This document shows positions 27,202 through 38,105 of a DNA stretch of 64,000 nt, piece by piece. Both the position numbers and the translations under genes were made by a program. The notes beneath the pieces are model-generated. The model had not been told where the DNA came from and did no database searches. It was given only the letters and a program-made list of their open reading frames with translations. Source of the DNA: Trichosphaerium sp. ATCC 40318 (Eukaryota; Protista; Tubulinea); NCBI GenBank assembly GCA_038496445.1, contig JALMLS010000156.1, positions 1-64,000 on the forward strand, written 5' to 3'. Every line of letters starts with the position of its first letter. The first letter of the stretch is position 1.

Positions 27202-30200
27202 TTATCCGCGGAATGTACCAGCATTTTGGAACGCATAATCTGTTTGATCGACGCCCGGAGCAGTCTTCATCTTATCATTAACGCCTAAGCAAAAAAAAAT
27301 TAAATCTCTCAGTCACGTGGACTAAAATCTTGTTTTACCTTTTATGACTCTAGCAAGTGTTGTTACTGTGGATGCAGGTAATAATGCTGCCAATGCACCA
27401 AGTATATTCGAAATATATGATTCTATTTCCTTAAGAGCAACAGCTGTTGTCTTCTTTAGCTTCATTTTCTAAAAGAAAGAAAAAGAGTTAAACCGAAGAA
27501 CCTTGTTTTTTTTTTCGTTTTTTGAAGTTACCTGATCATCAGTTGGAAAGAAATTTGGTGGACGTGGTCTGGTAACAGGTAGTATATACTGTTCAGATTC
27601 TTCAAGATCCCACTTAATTTGTCGAGCAAGTTGTGCAACAGGAACAATTTGTTCCAATTGTTTGCAACGAACCAAGTATCTCTTTACAGAAATTAGATGT
27701 TGACGAACATCATGACACACGTTCATAGCTTCAAACCTATAATGTAATTAGAATGTTTAACTACATACCATAAAATAGGTAATACGTATAAAGAAAACCA
27801 CAAAAGAGAAGTAGAGTTGAGAAGTAAGATAAAAAAAAATTATAGTGTAAGTACTTTAGTTTGTTAAGTTTTTCTTCAGGTGTCATCTTCGTTTGCCACT
27901 CTGGTACTTTCTCCTCTTCTTCCTCTTCAAAATGTTCTTCAGGTCTCTTAGCATGTTCTCCGGATCCCTTTATACCATAAAGTCAACACAAAATCATTTC
28001 GTTTCTTTAAGAAAGAGCAAGAAAAACAAAAGCGTACTCCAACAAAGTCCATAAGGGAAGGTTTACCCTTTTTCTTCTTTCCTTGACGTTTACGTTCTCT
28101 CTTCCTTTCCTTCATCTTACGCTCTTGTTCGTACGCTATAAAATAACGTTAGGCCCATAAAAAAGCACAAAAAGGAACTCAACAAAGAATACACTAACTT
28201 GTATCCAAAAAAAAAAAAAGACTTACCAAAGTATTGTTTGTTCAAGTGATCAATCATATGATCTGTTCCAATCCTGTACTTGTTCATCAACTGCTCATTT
28301 TCGAAAGGATTTCTATCAAGTGTACAAGTTTTCAATTGTTGACATTGACCCATACTTAAAGGTAAATCTAAAGAAAGAGTATGAGAATAAAGTCCGTCAA
28401 AAAAGAAAACTCTAGTAAAAATCGCTTGAGAATTTACACATAAGATCACGTGCCGCTTATTCTGTTATCAGAAATATTAAGAGAAACCAAACGTGACATC
28501 TGACCGAAATTCTTTGGCAATGCAGTGAGCTTATTGGTACCCAAATTGAGTTCCAAAAGACGCAACATTCCACAGAAACCTTCAGGAAGCTCTGTAAGAT
28601 TACAAGCGTTCATATCAAGAATCTCCATGTACGACATTTGTCCCATAGTTTCAGGAACAGATGTAAGAGGATTACCCGCAAGATTAAGTTCTAAGAAGAA
28701 ACATATAAGTACGAAGAAACCCAGAAAAGAAAAAAAAAAGAAGAAAAAACTCAATTTATCACTCCCTTACCTTCAAGATTCGTAAGGTTTCCGATAGTGT
28801 GTGGAATTGATCTTAAACTGTTATTCGCAACATCTAGCCTTATCATATTACTAAGCATACCAATTTCATCTGGAAGAGATAATAGCTGATTACCTATGAC
28901 GAGTTAACGAGGTTGGAATAAAAAAAAGGATGTTGGGTTGTTTTTAATTCGTGCCATTAACGAAGAGTAGTTCAAGCGTCTTTAAACGACCCAATGCCGG
29001 TGGAATACGCTCGAGCATATTACCAGAGATGTATAGAGATCTTAGCGATTTAAAGGCACTAAAATCTGGCCATGAAGTGATCCTAACACGAGTAAGTAAG
29101 AATGGCGTCCGACAAGAACAATAGTATGTAAAAAGAGTTTCTGGAAATCAGTTTAGTTGGTGGCTTCCTGTTGATTATAGGAGACTGATGATTAGCATGT
29201 GTCACGTACGCATTAAAACCCAAGTCGAGGGAGGTCCAATCAGAACGTGCATTTACAATAGGAGGAATCACCTTAAGCTCACAACCAGTCAAATCAAGTT
29301 CAAGCACTTTTTCTTCCTCCAATAATTCATCTAACAAGCGATTAGTTACTCCACACCCATTTGCGTTATTATTGGCTTGTGTTAATATAGCTAAAAGTAA
29401 AAAAAAAACTAGTTCAAAATCACAACAACTTCATTACTTCTTTCCTGAAAAGCAAGAACTGACAAACAAAAACTCTACCTTGATTTCCTAGTGTTTGAAG
29501 GGCAGCCTGTACACGACGTCTCACAAGTTGTTTAGAGTCTATTTTAGCAGAAGAGGATTGTTGGCGACTACTAAAGAAGGAATCAGAGGTTGAGAGTTTC
29601 GAAAAAAAAAAAACCAAAAAAAAACCAATTAAAATATCACGTGCACTTCTTTTTGGCCAGGAACGAATGCTAAACATATATCACCAGTTACTTTATCGCT
29701 CTTTCCGGAACGTGCATTAAGCTTGAACCAACCAGGGGTACCGTCAAGAGTAACCTAAACAGTTTTTGTCAACAACTAAACTTGATAGCGTTGGCTACGC
29801 GCGTAGTGGGTGCCATAAAAAAATAAGGAAAGCGGAGACCAAAAATAGCGTTATTGTCGCTGTCAGTACAACAAAAATGTTGTCAACAGGTTTTTATGAA
29901 TAAATAAAACAGTTTAAACTGAAATTGGGTGTACCTGCGCCATATCTAAAATTACTAAGCCCAAAAAGTCGTCTGAACCTATAGCATCTTTGTCCCATAC
30001 AGTAACGAGTAGTTTTGTCGTTTTAGAAAAATCTCTGTGATGAATCAACGTCAGAAATTGCTGTGATTAAATAATTGAGGGTTATGAGTTCGTACACGTT
30101 AAAGATTTCCTCCCATTTAGGGTTTAGCGTTTTTGGTTTTACTTTAGATTTATAACGTCTTCCGCCTGCTGTCAAGACTGTGTAAGGGTCCGAATAACCG

Positions 30201-32511: not shown

Positions 32512-32830
32512 AAAAAAACCCTTGTGGCAAAATCGTTCTTGTTAATCTCATCCATTATGTACGTCTCTTGCAATTCTTTTATCCTAAATACTATTGATCA
32601 ATTTTGATTTAACTACAGCATCTATGACCTGGTACTGGACTGCCTAGTACAAGCAATTATGCAAAAAACAAGAAGTTATTCTCTACTGTCCAGATTCATC
32701 ATTTTTAGAGTGCAAATATCACGTTTTATGGTGAAAGGTTGGCAGATTTGTTAATCACAACATGTCAACTTTATTGTCACTAATAAACCAAGGGTATATT
32801 TACATTCATTGGAATTCGTATAGAATACCT

Positions 32831-35800
32831 TTAGGAATTCTTAGGAGTACGCTTAGCGCGTTTTGTATCTTTATCAGGTCTCATATCGCCACTTGCTGCT
32901 CTCTACATTCACTATTAATCGGAGGAAAAAATAAAAAAAAACCAAAACACAGCAAGCCAAAAAATGAACGTCAAAATTTTGCTGTCACGTGTCACAATTT
33001 AAAAAAATCATAGCATTAATCAATACCTTCTTTCCTTTACTAAGATTTACATCAACATCCATGTCATTAGCGCTGAGACACAACACATTAACAACCACAG
33101 AGAAGAAAATCAAAAAACGTACTCTTTCTGGAACTCATTTTCTTCTTTATTGCTTTCATTGCTTTCTTCCTTACCCTCAGGTTTTTTCTCCATAAAGAAA
33201 CTTTTTGAAAGAGTTCTTACTTTATCTTTAATAGTATTTATCCTTCTATATCCCCAGAATACATTTTTTCGATTTGTTTGAGAGAAGTCATCCTTGTGAA
33301 CAATCCTTTAAGAAATCAATATAAAAACCAACGGAGGAGGTTCCTTACTTAACCTTCCCTCTAAGCAACTCAAGATCAATAACCTCTGATTTATCAGTCA
33401 GTACTAGTTCTCTATCGTCCTTTGTCATATATTTCAAATGAGTCAGTTCCTTATCAGCAGGCCTTGAAGAGTATCTTTAATAACAACTTGTAGTAAAAAG
33501 TTATACACGCACCATCGAATCAGCTTTTTCTTAGCGTCACCACGTGCATACCATGAAACACGTGCTTTCTTTTTATCAAATCTATCCTCAAACATATCAT
33601 CTATTCGTCCATATGCCTTACCTTGATCTAAACGCGAAAATGAGCAATAACAGTTGCAAGGAGCGCTCCAGTTTTTTTTACAAAATACTTACCACCGACA
33701 TCCAAATTAACATGCTCAAGTGTTATCTCTATCATTACATTGCTTTCAATATCATACTGTATCTTATTAACAACTGCTGATGAGAAGTATGTCTTTCCTC
33801 TCTTCTCCTCAATCGGCTGTCCAAGCCATGTTATACCATCAGCTCTAAAACAAATAAGAAAAAAACACGAAAAAAATGCAGTACACCAAAATCCCTATCC
33901 TCAGAAAAAAAAAAAAGCACGTGCCCTAGCTTATGAGCCTTATATTTTTTCATAGTCTTATTGACTTTATGTTTTTTAACAGCATCTGTTGTGGTTTCTT
34001 TGAGCCTCTTTTTCACAGCTTTATTTCTAAGCAAAATTTTATATTCTCTATCACATCTAGCTTGTTCTTCCTTTAAAATAAAAGTCTCAATCAGTACACA
34101 ACCACTCTACCCTTAGAATAACGCATATCATACCGGTGCATTAACCTCAGCTTCCCAACTGTTGTATGTATCAGACCAACCTTTCCATTTCACCAAGTAC
34201 TCACGTCTTCCCTGTTGAAAAGAAATCAACAAAAAAAAAGCATGTAATTTGATCTCTGCATACCTCGTTGTCTCTAGCTTGTATCAACTTCTCGATTTCC
34301 CATGTCTCTCCTGCTTCCCAATCATCAACTTCGCCTTCTTCATCTTCCTTTACTTCATCCAAGTTAATTTCAATCTCAGACTCTGATGATTCAGAGTCAG
34401 AATCAACAACCACTCTTCTTCCTCTTGGCTTCAATTTCTGTTTTTGTGAGTGAGTCAAATACACTCTTTAATATCCTCTATTGTATACCTTTGGCGTATT
34501 TTTTTCTTTCCTAACAGGTTCTACGCTGTCTTCGTCACTATCATACACTTCATTAATAGAAACAAGTTTCTCTTTCCTTTTTCTTTCTTTTTCCTCTTGT
34601 TGCCTTCTTTTTTCATCCAAGCCTTCAAGACCAAGTCTAAGTACCCTCCTATTTAAAAAGTTAATAAGGTTTTGAAAAGTAACAGGAAAACGCACAGCTT
34701 AGCAGCTGATCTTTTGTGTTTTAACATTTCTTGATACTCTTTTATGAGCTTTGGAGCGTTTATTTCAGAAACCCATGAATTTCTTTCAGCTGAGTATCCT
34801 TTCCATTTAACTAGGAAATCAATGCCCTAATATTCAAACATTAGCCACTGACCACATCCAGCATATAAGCTATGATATTTCACAAATTCAAGGCTGGTAA
34901 AAATGTACACGTGATAGATTTAGTAACATAAAAAGTTGGATGGAAATGTTTGTGCGGTTTTTTTTTGTTGTTGACGTACACTTGGACGTTTTTGATGGTC
35001 AATAATTCTTTCTACTTCCCATTCATCCTCATCCATGTCTTCACTTTGTTCTAAAAGGCTTGATATTTTTGAGAAATCTGCTTTTTCTAATCACTTAATG
35101 TTAGAGTAAAAAAAAACTTGTGCGAAGATAAGTCATCGTTGTTTTAATTTTAAAAGAACTTCGTTGTACATTCGTACCTGTTGTTACAAGAAAGTTGAAC
35201 TTTCCTGCTGCTTTGAATAGAATAACGTTCTTTGCTCTAAAGCTATTGACACAGCGAGGTGTATGCTCATCACAACTGTTGAGGAAAAAAAACGTGAGAA
35301 TGAACAAAAAAAAAAGAGAATGAGTGACATTAGTCACCCTATGATCTTTTTTAATTACCTCTTTGAGAATCCGAGTTGGTGATGTTTACCTTGACCAAAA
35401 CCATAGCAAAGGCCTATAAATATTACGTAAGAAACCAAAAATAAGTTAGATTTAAAACAGGTCAACAATTAGACTTTGTAAGACTTTAACTTTTATGCCT
35501 TACCATTTGTTGCAATAACCATTGTGTGATAATCACCTGCCGCACATTTATGAAAGAATTCTTCTTCTACAGTGTCAAATCTAACACGATGAGGTACATC
35601 TTTTTCAGCCAGTTCACCAATACCAAGTTGACCTTTTTTGTTTTGGTTAGTAATTTTGCTGCACCTCTCCCTGTGTACTTCTTTTTCGTACCTTCGCTAC
35701 CTCTTCCCCAAGTATATACACTACCATTCTCTATTTTAAAGTTAGTAAATGAAAGACCCAACACCACCTCTGAGAGTAACTCGTTACCTGAAATTACAAC

Positions 35801-37203
35801 ACAATGATTTTTTCCAGCATCTGCGTCTATTATTTTGTGACCCATGAGGTTTCTGACACAGCTTGGTGTATCTATATCTTTTGTAGATTTACCTAGACCT
35901 ATTACATACGTTAACAAAGGATCCAAAGACGAAAAAAAGAAAGAGCATTCCAAATAAAATAAAAAAAAAGCTGTTCAGTTCATCAGCGTACCGAGTTGGC
36001 CGTGCTCTTTGCATCCCCATGTGAACACTTGCCCTTCCTCTAAAAAATCACTAAGTGAGTTTTCAATTTAGCAGGTTTTATTTCCTGTACGTACTTGTCA
36101 CGGCAAGAGAGAAATCATATCCAAGAGCAATTTTCGAAACATCTTTTTCACGTAATGCTTTCACCGGCACTGGAACCAATGACGAGCCCTTTACAATACG
36201 TTAATGCTATATTAAGGATAAAAAGTATCTGTGTAGGTCTCTGAAGGGCCATTGAAGGTGGGTGAAACAGTTTCACGTGTGTTATTTTCTTTTCTTAGTC
36301 GTAAAAAATTACCTTTTTTCCTATCCCAAGACGTCCATTGCCGTTGTTTCCCCATGCATAAACCTTGCTATCCTCTAAAAGAAGTAAAGTAAATACTCAA
36401 TGAAACACGTGTATGATACACCACTTTTTTACGTTGGGCAGACAATAAAGCCAGGGAAAGAGACGTACTTGTAATAGCCATTGCGAAATTATGTGAGCAA
36501 ACAACTTCTCTGATGTTCTTCAATGTTTTGACAGGTACAGGCGTTTTAACAGATGACAGCGTTCCTTATATTAATTCAGACGAGATCAGAGGCGTAAAAT
36601 CACCAGTTGAAGCGTACTGGAGGAAATAATATAAAAAATGCCGTTAAAAAGATTTAATTGTTTGGTTTCGTTGGGAGCGCTTGTTTCGGTTTTTACGTGC
36701 GTACCTGTACCAAGCTGGCCACTTTTGTTTGATCCAACACTTACACATGTGCCATCAGCTATAATGTGTTAAGAGTGTTATTGAGTGTAATAATAGCGTA
36801 CTTAGAACGCAAACAAGAAAGTCTGCCCCAACCGCAGCATTAACAACTTTGTATTTACTGAAAACACCCTAGGTGTGTTAGAAATTGTTGTAAGATGCCA
36901 CATACAGGAGTCACTGGAATAGAAACGTAACTTCCCCACATCTCTTTGATTTTTTCCATTACCCTCCCCCAAACTAATGGAGAGCCCGATTCTATGCGTT
37001 TTAAGTTGTCTACAAATCGCAGAATCAATTGTACTTGTAACAGCGCAACAAAGATAACCAGAGCAATCTAAGGACGTAGGATTTTCATCTGAAAGCGCTT
37101 TAACAAGCTGTGGCGTATGTACATTTCTAGAGCCACTTTGACACAATGTATTTTCTTTGTTTTCGCCCCAGCAATAAACAAACGTATCAACAGCAGACGT
37201 CAT
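32831..37203 (-). CDS. RCC1-repeat plus two chromodomains plus BAH domain protein
   Basis: RCC1 repeats ([33 protein letters not shown]); chromo 1 [23 protein letters not shown]; chromo 2 [24 protein letters not shown]; [37 protein letters not shown]. Confidence 0.8.
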
Positions 37204-37294
37204 GGGTTATTATAGCGTTTAGTGTTTTCTGGCGCAGTGACTTAATAAAATTGTCAAGGCACATTTTAGCGCACCGTCACACAGATAGCAGGTA

Positions 37295-38105
37295 ATGAAC
37301 AAGGTAAAGCTATTTAAGCGTGCCAAGGGCTTTCGTGGACGCTCAAAGAGCTGCGTACGCGTTGCTAGGCCAGCAGTTCAAAAGGCCATGTTATACGAAT
37401 ACCGTGATCGCAGGACGAAGAAACGAAATATTAGACAAATGTGGATCCAGCAAACAAATACTGCACTACATTTACATGGTACGTGACTCCTGCAGGTAGT
37501 TAATCGCCATAGAGTGTTTTCTACGCTATTCCCTGTTTTTAATTCTAAATGACTGGAATAGGCTTAAATTACAGCCAATTTGTACCTGCACTTCAGCGAG
37601 GCCACTGTGTTTTAAATCGTAAAATATTGGCTGAGCTTGCTGTCAATGAACCATACAGTTTCCACGCTCTTACAGAGTACGCTCGTCAACACCCACCAGC
37701 AGAGGGCCTTCGCGATACAAACAGACACAGGTAAGTTTATGATTACTATATTGCTCAAATACAGGCCTATTCGCACGTAAAACAACAATGCCGCAATAGC
37801 AGGCGTTTAAACAAAAAAAATTTTGCCAATTGTTCAACCACAACTCACCCAATCGTTTTAGAATGAACGTTGTAGAAGAAATAGTAGATCCACCAGCACC
37901 AAAGTGGGTATTGAACGACAGGAAGATCAATTGGGATGCAGTAAACGAACGCTTCCTACAAGTACCTCGATTGGCTGGACGTGGCAGAAACGTTGCATTG
38001 AGAGACGATATCATCAAAAAGAGAAAACGTCTAGTACAATTGACAGAGCGCTTTTCGAAACAAAAAACAGAGCTCGACGAAATCAGAAAACAAGCGCAAA
38101 TGTAA
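37295..38105 (+). CDS. MRPL20: Mitochondrial ribosomal protein bL20 with a C-terminal extension
   Basis: AKGFRGRSK, YRDRRTKKRNIRQMWI, LNYSQF, LNRKILAELAVNEPYSF. Confidence 0.93.

Follow-up and report, generated by a model that had tools for sequence, protein, structure and literature searches.

Multivalent readers convert weak contacts with single histone marks into specific chromatin targeting. The chromodomains of CHD proteins adjoin each other and form one unit beside an SNF2 ATPase, that of the plant chromomethylases is embedded in the catalytic domain, and the RCC1-like domains (RLDs) of HERC1, HERC2 and UVR8 act as protein-binding platforms. Here we describe a gene, hereafter the reader gene, in a 64,000-nucleotide (nt) stretch of DNA from Trichosphaerium sp. 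ATCC 40318 (assembly GCA_038496445.1, contig JALMLS010000156.1, positions 1 to 64,000; hereafter the window). Its product carries an RLD, two chromodomains and a probable BAH domain on one chain, an unusual but real fusion, multivalent chromatin readers as such being already known. The locus is a single expressed, spliced, single-copy nuclear gene, not two genes.

The whole window is eukaryotic DNA with 37% G+C and frequent short introns. The reader gene runs on the minus strand from an ATG at 37203 to a TAA stop at 32833-32831, and its 25 exons form an intact frame of 2586 nt encoding 861 residues (97.6 kDa, isoelectric point 8.7). Its 24 introns measure 37-153 nt each; 23 are GT-AG, with donors mostly GTACG or GTAAG, and one is GC-AG. 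A word-index search for transcript data returned three public runs from three studies (X1, X2 and X3) that hold parts of the locus, and every contig from them that was placed on the locus was spliced. Altogether, 16 of the 24 introns (2-4, 12, 13 and 14-24) were confirmed as removed in this complementary DNA (cDNA). X1, with one 1570-nt contig at a depth of 16.6, and X3 both lacked introns 14-24 as predicted, and their contigs reach from exon 14 as far as the poly(A) site, ending at 32747 and 32768, shortly past an AATAAA; the transcript thus ends ~85 nt past the stop codon. X2 covers exons 1-5 and 19-21 and lacks introns 2, 3, 4, 18 and 19.

The sequence-only reading of this DNA had placed an RCC1 propeller, two chromodomains and a BAH domain in one gene and had named RNA across the RLD/chromodomain junction as one check. 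That RNA exists: the joint from 35086 to 35178, linking RLD exon 13 to chromodomain exon 14, is present in one X3 contig (depth 6; shorter side 100 letters), which makes the locus a single transcription unit. Exon 13 ends in ...NFLVTT in phase 1, with the donor G/GTACGA at 35178/35177 and no stop codon ahead of it. By our own reading, three acceptors of intron 13 (35087, 35078 and 35051) are in frame with exon 14, and a branch-like CTAAC lies 13 nt upstream of the first. Two of them, 35087 and 35051, had been proposed as alternatives; the frame holds for both, and the bridging contig uses 35087, while no use of 35078 or 35051 was seen in the cDNA contigs. Beyond exon 13, this contig continues into the last 12 nt of exon 12 (loose end at 35277) and then into the reverse complement of TATCAACGCAGAGTACG, which we take to be the SMART template-switch oligo. 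Intron 12 was therefore spliced, and the contig is a cDNA whose 5′ end lies inside exon 12, in the propeller region. The features of the locus are as follows.

32831..37203, minus strand: entire coding region; frame intact, 16 of 24 introns removed in public cDNA contigs
35179..37203, minus strand: exons 1-13, seven-bladed RLD, residues 1-369 (PF00415, PDB matches, blade layout)
35087..35177, minus strand: intron 13, the RLD/chromodomain junction, GTACGA...GATTAG, 91 nt (cDNA joint)
34713..35027, minus strand: chromodomain 1, residues 390-443, exons 14-15, HP1-like, predicted cage W392/W414/Y417 (PF00385, CBX5 match)
34309..34712, minus strand: charged linker 1, residues 444-545, a K/R/E-rich part followed by an acidic serine-rich part (composition)
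34020..34308, minus strand: chromodomain 2, residues 546-603, exons 17-19, Polycomb-CBX-like, predicted cage W548/W570/W573 (PF00385, CBX8/4/2 matches)
33845..33924, minus strand: intron 19, GC-AG, GCACGT...TTTTAG, 80 nt (cDNA joint in X1, X2 and X3)
33236..33843, minus strand: probable BAH domain, residues 636-785, exons 20-23, DNMT1-BAH1-like (weak exon-level matches)
32831..33235, minus strand: low-complexity tail, residues 786-861, with a basic end resembling a nuclear localization signal (NLS), and stop codon (translation, composition)
32747..32830, minus strand: 3′ untranslated region, AATAAA at 32775-32770, 56 nt past the stop (cDNA contig ends at 32747 and 32768)
37204..37294, no strand: head-to-head intergenic region of 91 nt between the reader gene and a bL20-type gene (ATG at 37295, plus strand)

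Intron 19 was the only one for which the cDNA changed the model. A GTGTAC donor at 33886, used in the first model, was ruled out by the joint from 33844 to 33925 seen in X1, X3 and X2 (ends CT..GC on the plus strand), which gives ...KAHKLG/ADGITWLG; the GC-AG version drops a run of junk codons. A retrocopy origin of the spliced contigs was ruled out as well: the spliced exon 13/14 junction is absent from the 70-Mb assembly even when two mismatches are allowed, and exons 1, 11 and 20 each match this locus alone in a genome search. With no retrocopy in the genome, the spliced contigs come from RNA. Relative to the window, X3 shows four coding differences, three of them synonymous and one changing a residue in the disordered tail. 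Close paralogues of the reader gene's exons were not found in the genome. The exon 13/14 and exon 20/21 junction patterns gave no match in metagenome contigs.

The predicted intron 1 (36992-37034, minus strand, 43 nt) has no spliced read, and one 151-nt X2 contig (depth 2) retains its last 17 nt though intron 2 is spliced in the same contig. In this contig, either intron 1 was retained or splicing removed an alternative intron of 25 nt with its end at 37010, which would add six in-frame codons. We also observed that the X1, X2 and X3 contigs are at least 99% identical to the reader gene though they are filed under three organism labels, so that either one organism goes under several names or some runs hold a contaminant or co-cultured organism.

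Domain database tests were run exon by exon rather than on the spliced protein, which reduces their power; the Pfam gathering cut-offs were 21.7 bits for PF00415, 25.1 bits for PF00385 and 30.8 bits for PF01426 (BAH). Four exons of the propeller exceeded the PF00415 cut-off (exon 1, 30.0 bits; exon 11, 23.8; exon 9, 22.6; exon 7, 22.0), and the domain divides into seven blades of 50-56 residues, several of which share an intron position. Several repeats above the cut-off and seven blades place it in the RCC1-repeat superfamily. In the PDB, the RLD exons matched the HERC2 RLD (exon 1, 1.9e-14) and HERC1, then UVR8, RCC2 and RPGR, and structures of RCC1, Srm1 or BJ1 were absent from the matches of two RLD exon queries. 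Judging from the blade layout, no blade appears to hold an insert the size of the RCC1 beta-wedge or switchback loop. An N-terminal tail of the RCC1 type is also absent: the divergent bL20 ATG lies only 91 nt away, so the reader gene cannot reach further upstream and the propeller begins at residue 1. The features of RCC1 proper, namely closest similarity to RCC1/Srm1, a beta-wedge, and a nucleosome-binding loop and tail, were thus not found here. On these matches, the propeller resembles the RLDs of HERC proteins and UVR8 rather than the Ran exchange factor RCC1, and its nearest relatives are RLDs that are not guanine nucleotide exchange factors (GEFs). We further noted that intron 9 (35731-35787, minus strand, 57 nt) is in frame and stop-free, and that retaining it would lengthen the protein by 19 residues, placed between blades 5 and 6.

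Both chromodomains exceeded the PF00385 cut-off, the first with 33.4 bits on exon 15 (29.8 in a genome-wide scan) and the second with 36.7 bits on the 26-residue exon 18 (36.2 in the genome-wide scan). The best PDB match of chromodomain 1 was CBX5/HP1alpha (3.6e-6), and those of chromodomain 2 were CBX8, CBX4 and CBX2 (5e-8), with CHD1 among the weaker matches; a PDB search with exon 17 gave nothing relevant. In the tool alignments, cage positions 2 and 3 (KWKGY and KWKGW) line up with W and F/W of the CBX5 and CBX8 cages. The first cage residue of chromodomain 1, the W of DEWEVERI in exon 14, aligned weakly to the Y of the CDYL N-terminal strand, and that of chromodomain 2, the W of TWEIEKL, was assigned by sequence pattern alone. 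The cages W/W/Y and W/W/W already read from the letters agree with these alignments and patterns. Both domains would thus be canonical members of the HP1/Polycomb class with complete cages, for which methyl-lysine reading is plausible, and chromodomain 1 probably reads H3K9me. They are each other's closest relatives in the genome (61% identity) and carry a phase-0 intron at the identical position, which points to an internal duplication as the origin of the pair. The linker between them has 25 K+R, 30 D+E and 9 S among its 102 residues, and a lysine-rich linker separates chromodomain 2 from the probable BAH domain. A transposon origin of the chromodomains was ruled out, as the gene is single-copy and spliced, the domains are HP1/Pc-like and no exon carries a transposon domain.

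The region after chromodomain 2 was harder to assign. Exon 21 matched the Pfam BAH profile at positions 23-51 with an E-value of 0.005 and 17.1 bits, under the cut-off for this single-exon query, and the start of exon 20 resembled the opening residues of the crystallized DNMT1 BAH1 constructs (DRISWLGQPMKIEENRTYY) in a weak PDB match (E-value 0.038). These matches fall on two adjacent exons in the correct order. Exons 22 and 23 gave no BAH match on their own in Pfam or the PDB, PDB searches with exons 21, 22 and 23 returned nothing relevant, and an Atlas search pointed weakly to BAH for exon 20 and yielded noise for exon 22. A phmmer search with exon 20 against 1.84 billion representatives gave no match, a weak negative given a query of 50 residues and a library that does not hold the genome's own proteins. 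By eye, a BAH-like hydrophobic and aromatic pattern runs across exons 20-23 (a Y..GD-like strand, W[YF].R..[DE], and ELxL.D....I....L.GKV.V), and all introns inside the region were spliced in cDNA. We conclude that residues 636-785 very probably form a BAH domain, as the sequence-only reading had stated outright; the exon-level matches bear it out in part, at a level below the Pfam cut-off that makes it probable rather than proven.

The BAH1 domain of DNMT1 reads H4K20me3 through a Y/W/D/E pocket (PMC8093215). Counterparts of these four residues seem to be present in the reader gene's BAH region, a lead from our own by-eye alignment. Judged by tblastn and pairwise alignment, the region is no recent duplicate of the DNMT1 BAH1 encoded in this genome: tblastn of the BAH region against the genome found nothing. 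A search for DNMT1-BAH1-type relatives with the genome's own DNMT1 BAH1 exon as query yielded no candidates. The C-terminal tail that follows contains a basic, NLS-like stretch in its translation, in line with what had been noted from the letters.

We then considered what marks such a protein might meet in this organism. The genome contains a DNMT1-like gene at C7:645518-649049 (minus strand), in which C5-methyltransferase exons (47.7, 26.9 and 23.5 bits) are preceded by two BAH matches (29.5 and 22.2 bits), and a further C5-methyltransferase exon on C59. Because of the DNMT1-like gene, the organism probably methylates cytosine. Three chromoshadow exons were found (C12:410871, C56:251412 and C25:324177, the last ~0.5 kb from a chromodomain exon), together with a Pre-SET exon slightly below the cut-off at C223:66422; these are candidate HP1 and SUV39-type genes. 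Chromodomain exons number at least 29 in the genome. The DNMT1-like gene, the chromoshadow exons and the near-cut-off Pre-SET exon make a system of the H3K9me/HP1/5-methylcytosine type plausible in this organism.

The role that we favour, with moderate confidence, is that of a multivalent reader of repressive chromatin whose propeller serves as a docking platform. Each chromodomain would bind a methylated lysine of the ARKS type (H3K9me and/or H3K27me), while the BAH domain would supply a third contact, with a histone or the nucleosome. Affinity would build up from several weak contacts, made on a single nucleosome or on neighbours, the long charged linkers allowing the readers to reach one nucleosome or two adjacent ones, and the basic tail would bring the protein into the nucleus. 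The propeller itself does not belong to any known kind of histone reader; it would most likely be the output module, a docking surface that recruits a partner to marked chromatin, rather than a Ran exchange factor.

Several observations weigh against this picture of one long reader protein. None of the X1-X3 contigs shows intron 1 or introns 5-11 spliced, none spans the full transcript, and the X1 contig reaches no further than the 5′ border of exon 14, leaving space for isoform heterogeneity. The reader locus was not among the genome-wide BAH matches, and pairwise Smith-Waterman comparison of the spliced BAH region with the genome's own BAH exons was not significant (z 0.65-1.7); the Pfam score of exon 21 belongs on this side too. 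The division into an HP1-like and a Polycomb-like chromodomain rests on 24-40 aligned residues, and RNA, DNA and non-histone proteins are further possible chromodomain ligands. The transcript points bear on whether the locus might hold a pair of neighbouring genes, one for the RLD and one, starting at MDEDEW, for the chromodomains and BAH domain, with the fusion a rare read-through or conjoined transcript. The X1 contig, deep as it is, breaks off ~3 nt or less from the acceptor of exon 14 and leaves the RLD part uncovered, the bridging contig is single and of depth 6, and exon 14 holds an in-frame ATG. However, no stop codon closes exon 13, which ends in phase 1; retention of intron 13 would append 26 junk codons, and the gap has the form of a canonical 91-nt intron, branch-like CTAAC included. 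Intron 13 sequence is missing from the X1 contig, so a start inside the intron was not seen, and in an assembly graph, alternative acceptors or pre-mRNA reads break contigs at just such exon edges. A 3′ bias is usual in oligo-dT/SMART cDNA, and X2 has both halves at equal low depth. We therefore regard two separate genes as highly improbable.

The domain assignments leave room for two other explanations, both of which accept the single gene. One is a two-chromodomain adaptor whose C-terminal region is not BAH at all, being a lineage-specific domain of another fold. The score of 17.1 against a cut-off of 30.8 bits, the lack of BAH matches for exons 22 and 23, the empty search of 1.84 billion representatives with exon 20 and the non-significant similarity to the genome's own BAH domains all speak for it. 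It is nevertheless unlikely, in that two neighbouring exons independently indicate BAH in the correct order and the BAH consensus pattern runs through all four exons, the latter by our own reading and not as a tool result. The other is a chromatin-tethered exchange factor, in which a working GEF propeller would have exchanged the nucleosome loops of RCC1 for the chromodomains and BAH domain and would activate a GTPase on methylated heterochromatin. The RCC1 repeats are genuine by Pfam and RCC1 proper operates on chromatin, and the sequence-only reading had supposed that RCC1-like activity could be tethered in this way. The PDB matches speak otherwise, with HERC2, HERC1, UVR8, RCC2 and RPGR present and RCC1/Srm1/BJ1 missing, as do the uniform blades of 50-56 residues without a beta-wedge-sized insert; to our knowledge, moreover, most RLDs have no known GEF activity. 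Tethered Ran-GEF activity, though possible, is thus unsupported, and we consider this explanation quite improbable. A bolder variant, in which the propeller would act catalytically or allosterically on a small GTPase (Ran or Rab/Ras-like) only once the readers have docked on methylated heterochromatin, is very unlikely; we know of no description so far of such a histone-mark-gated switch coupling chromatin state to GTPase signalling.

The neighbours of the reader gene were also inspected. The divergent gene on the plus strand, whose first exon is at 37295-37483, encodes a bL20-type (mitochondrial-type) ribosomal protein (Pfam Ribosomal_L20, 2.6e-17). With merely 91 nt between the two ATGs, it probably shares one compact bidirectional promoter with the reader gene. 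Downstream of the reader gene, at 28117-29337 of the window (minus strand), leucine-rich-repeat open reading frames (LNLAGNPLTSVPE... and LDLTGCELKVIPP...) belong to a separate multi-exon leucine-rich-repeat gene.

We found no precedent for the combination. Literature searches for RCC1, chromodomain and BAH together yielded only unrelated papers, in a scope that did not include an InterPro architecture search. RCC1 goes unmentioned in the text of a survey of chromatin readers across 172 genomes, and in the accessible part of its supplements it appears, among the matches listed, only in architectures with SNF2 or SET. Within these sources, the suggestion that the architecture is absent from described proteins stands. 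Lineage-specific bursts of reader innovation have been reported across eukaryotes (10.1101/2021.11.30.470311), and the reader gene exemplifies them. It would place HP1-type, Polycomb-type and DNMT1-type BAH readers on one chain and join them to a propeller family better known for GTPase regulation and docking. The value of the case is limited, as it concerns one gene in one organism, with no orthologue found. Should the predicted binding of its readers hold, the protein would be a natural multi-mark probe, and it could show which activity an amoeba-like protist brings to silent chromatin.

Compared with known systems, the reader protein shares single parts with several families. Chromodomain 1 aligns best to HP1/CBX5 and keeps the three cage aromatics; unlike HP1, the protein adds a second chromodomain, a probable BAH domain and a propeller, and the genome profile scan found no chromoshadow domain on the reader gene's contig, which sets it outside the HP1 family. 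Chromodomain 2 carries the signature of Polycomb CBX2/4/6/7/8 proteins ending in ..Y.sWE, and CBX8/4/2 match it best, a likeness over 24 residues; unlike those proteins, it comes without a Pc box or a PRC1 context. Like CHD1-type proteins, the reader protein has two chromodomains in one polypeptide, but these are separated by the 102-residue charged linker and are seemingly internal duplicates, and no exon of the reader gene matched a helicase or SNF2 domain in Pfam, so that it does not belong with the CHD proteins.

The BAH region links the protein to DNA methyltransferases. Exon 20 has its match at the beginning of DNMT1 BAH1, and the chromomethylases CMT3/ZMET2 likewise combine a BAH domain with a chromodomain, both reading the same repressive chromatin. 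In the reader protein, by contrast, the chromodomains precede the BAH domain, and it belongs to neither methyltransferase family, having no C5-methyltransferase domain: PF00145 matches were found only on C7 and C59 in the genome scan and none on the reader gene's contig. Its propeller is most like the RLDs of HERC1, HERC2 and UVR8, the top PDB matches of the RLD exons, although the protein lacks HECT, SPRY or any other HERC domain and the chromatin-reader tail belongs to the reader gene alone. Finally, as in RCC1 on the nucleosome, a seven-bladed RCC1-repeat propeller would be attached to chromatin. RCC1 holds the nucleosome by its own loops and N-terminal tail, whereas in the reader protein the predicted attachment would be made by the appended readers.

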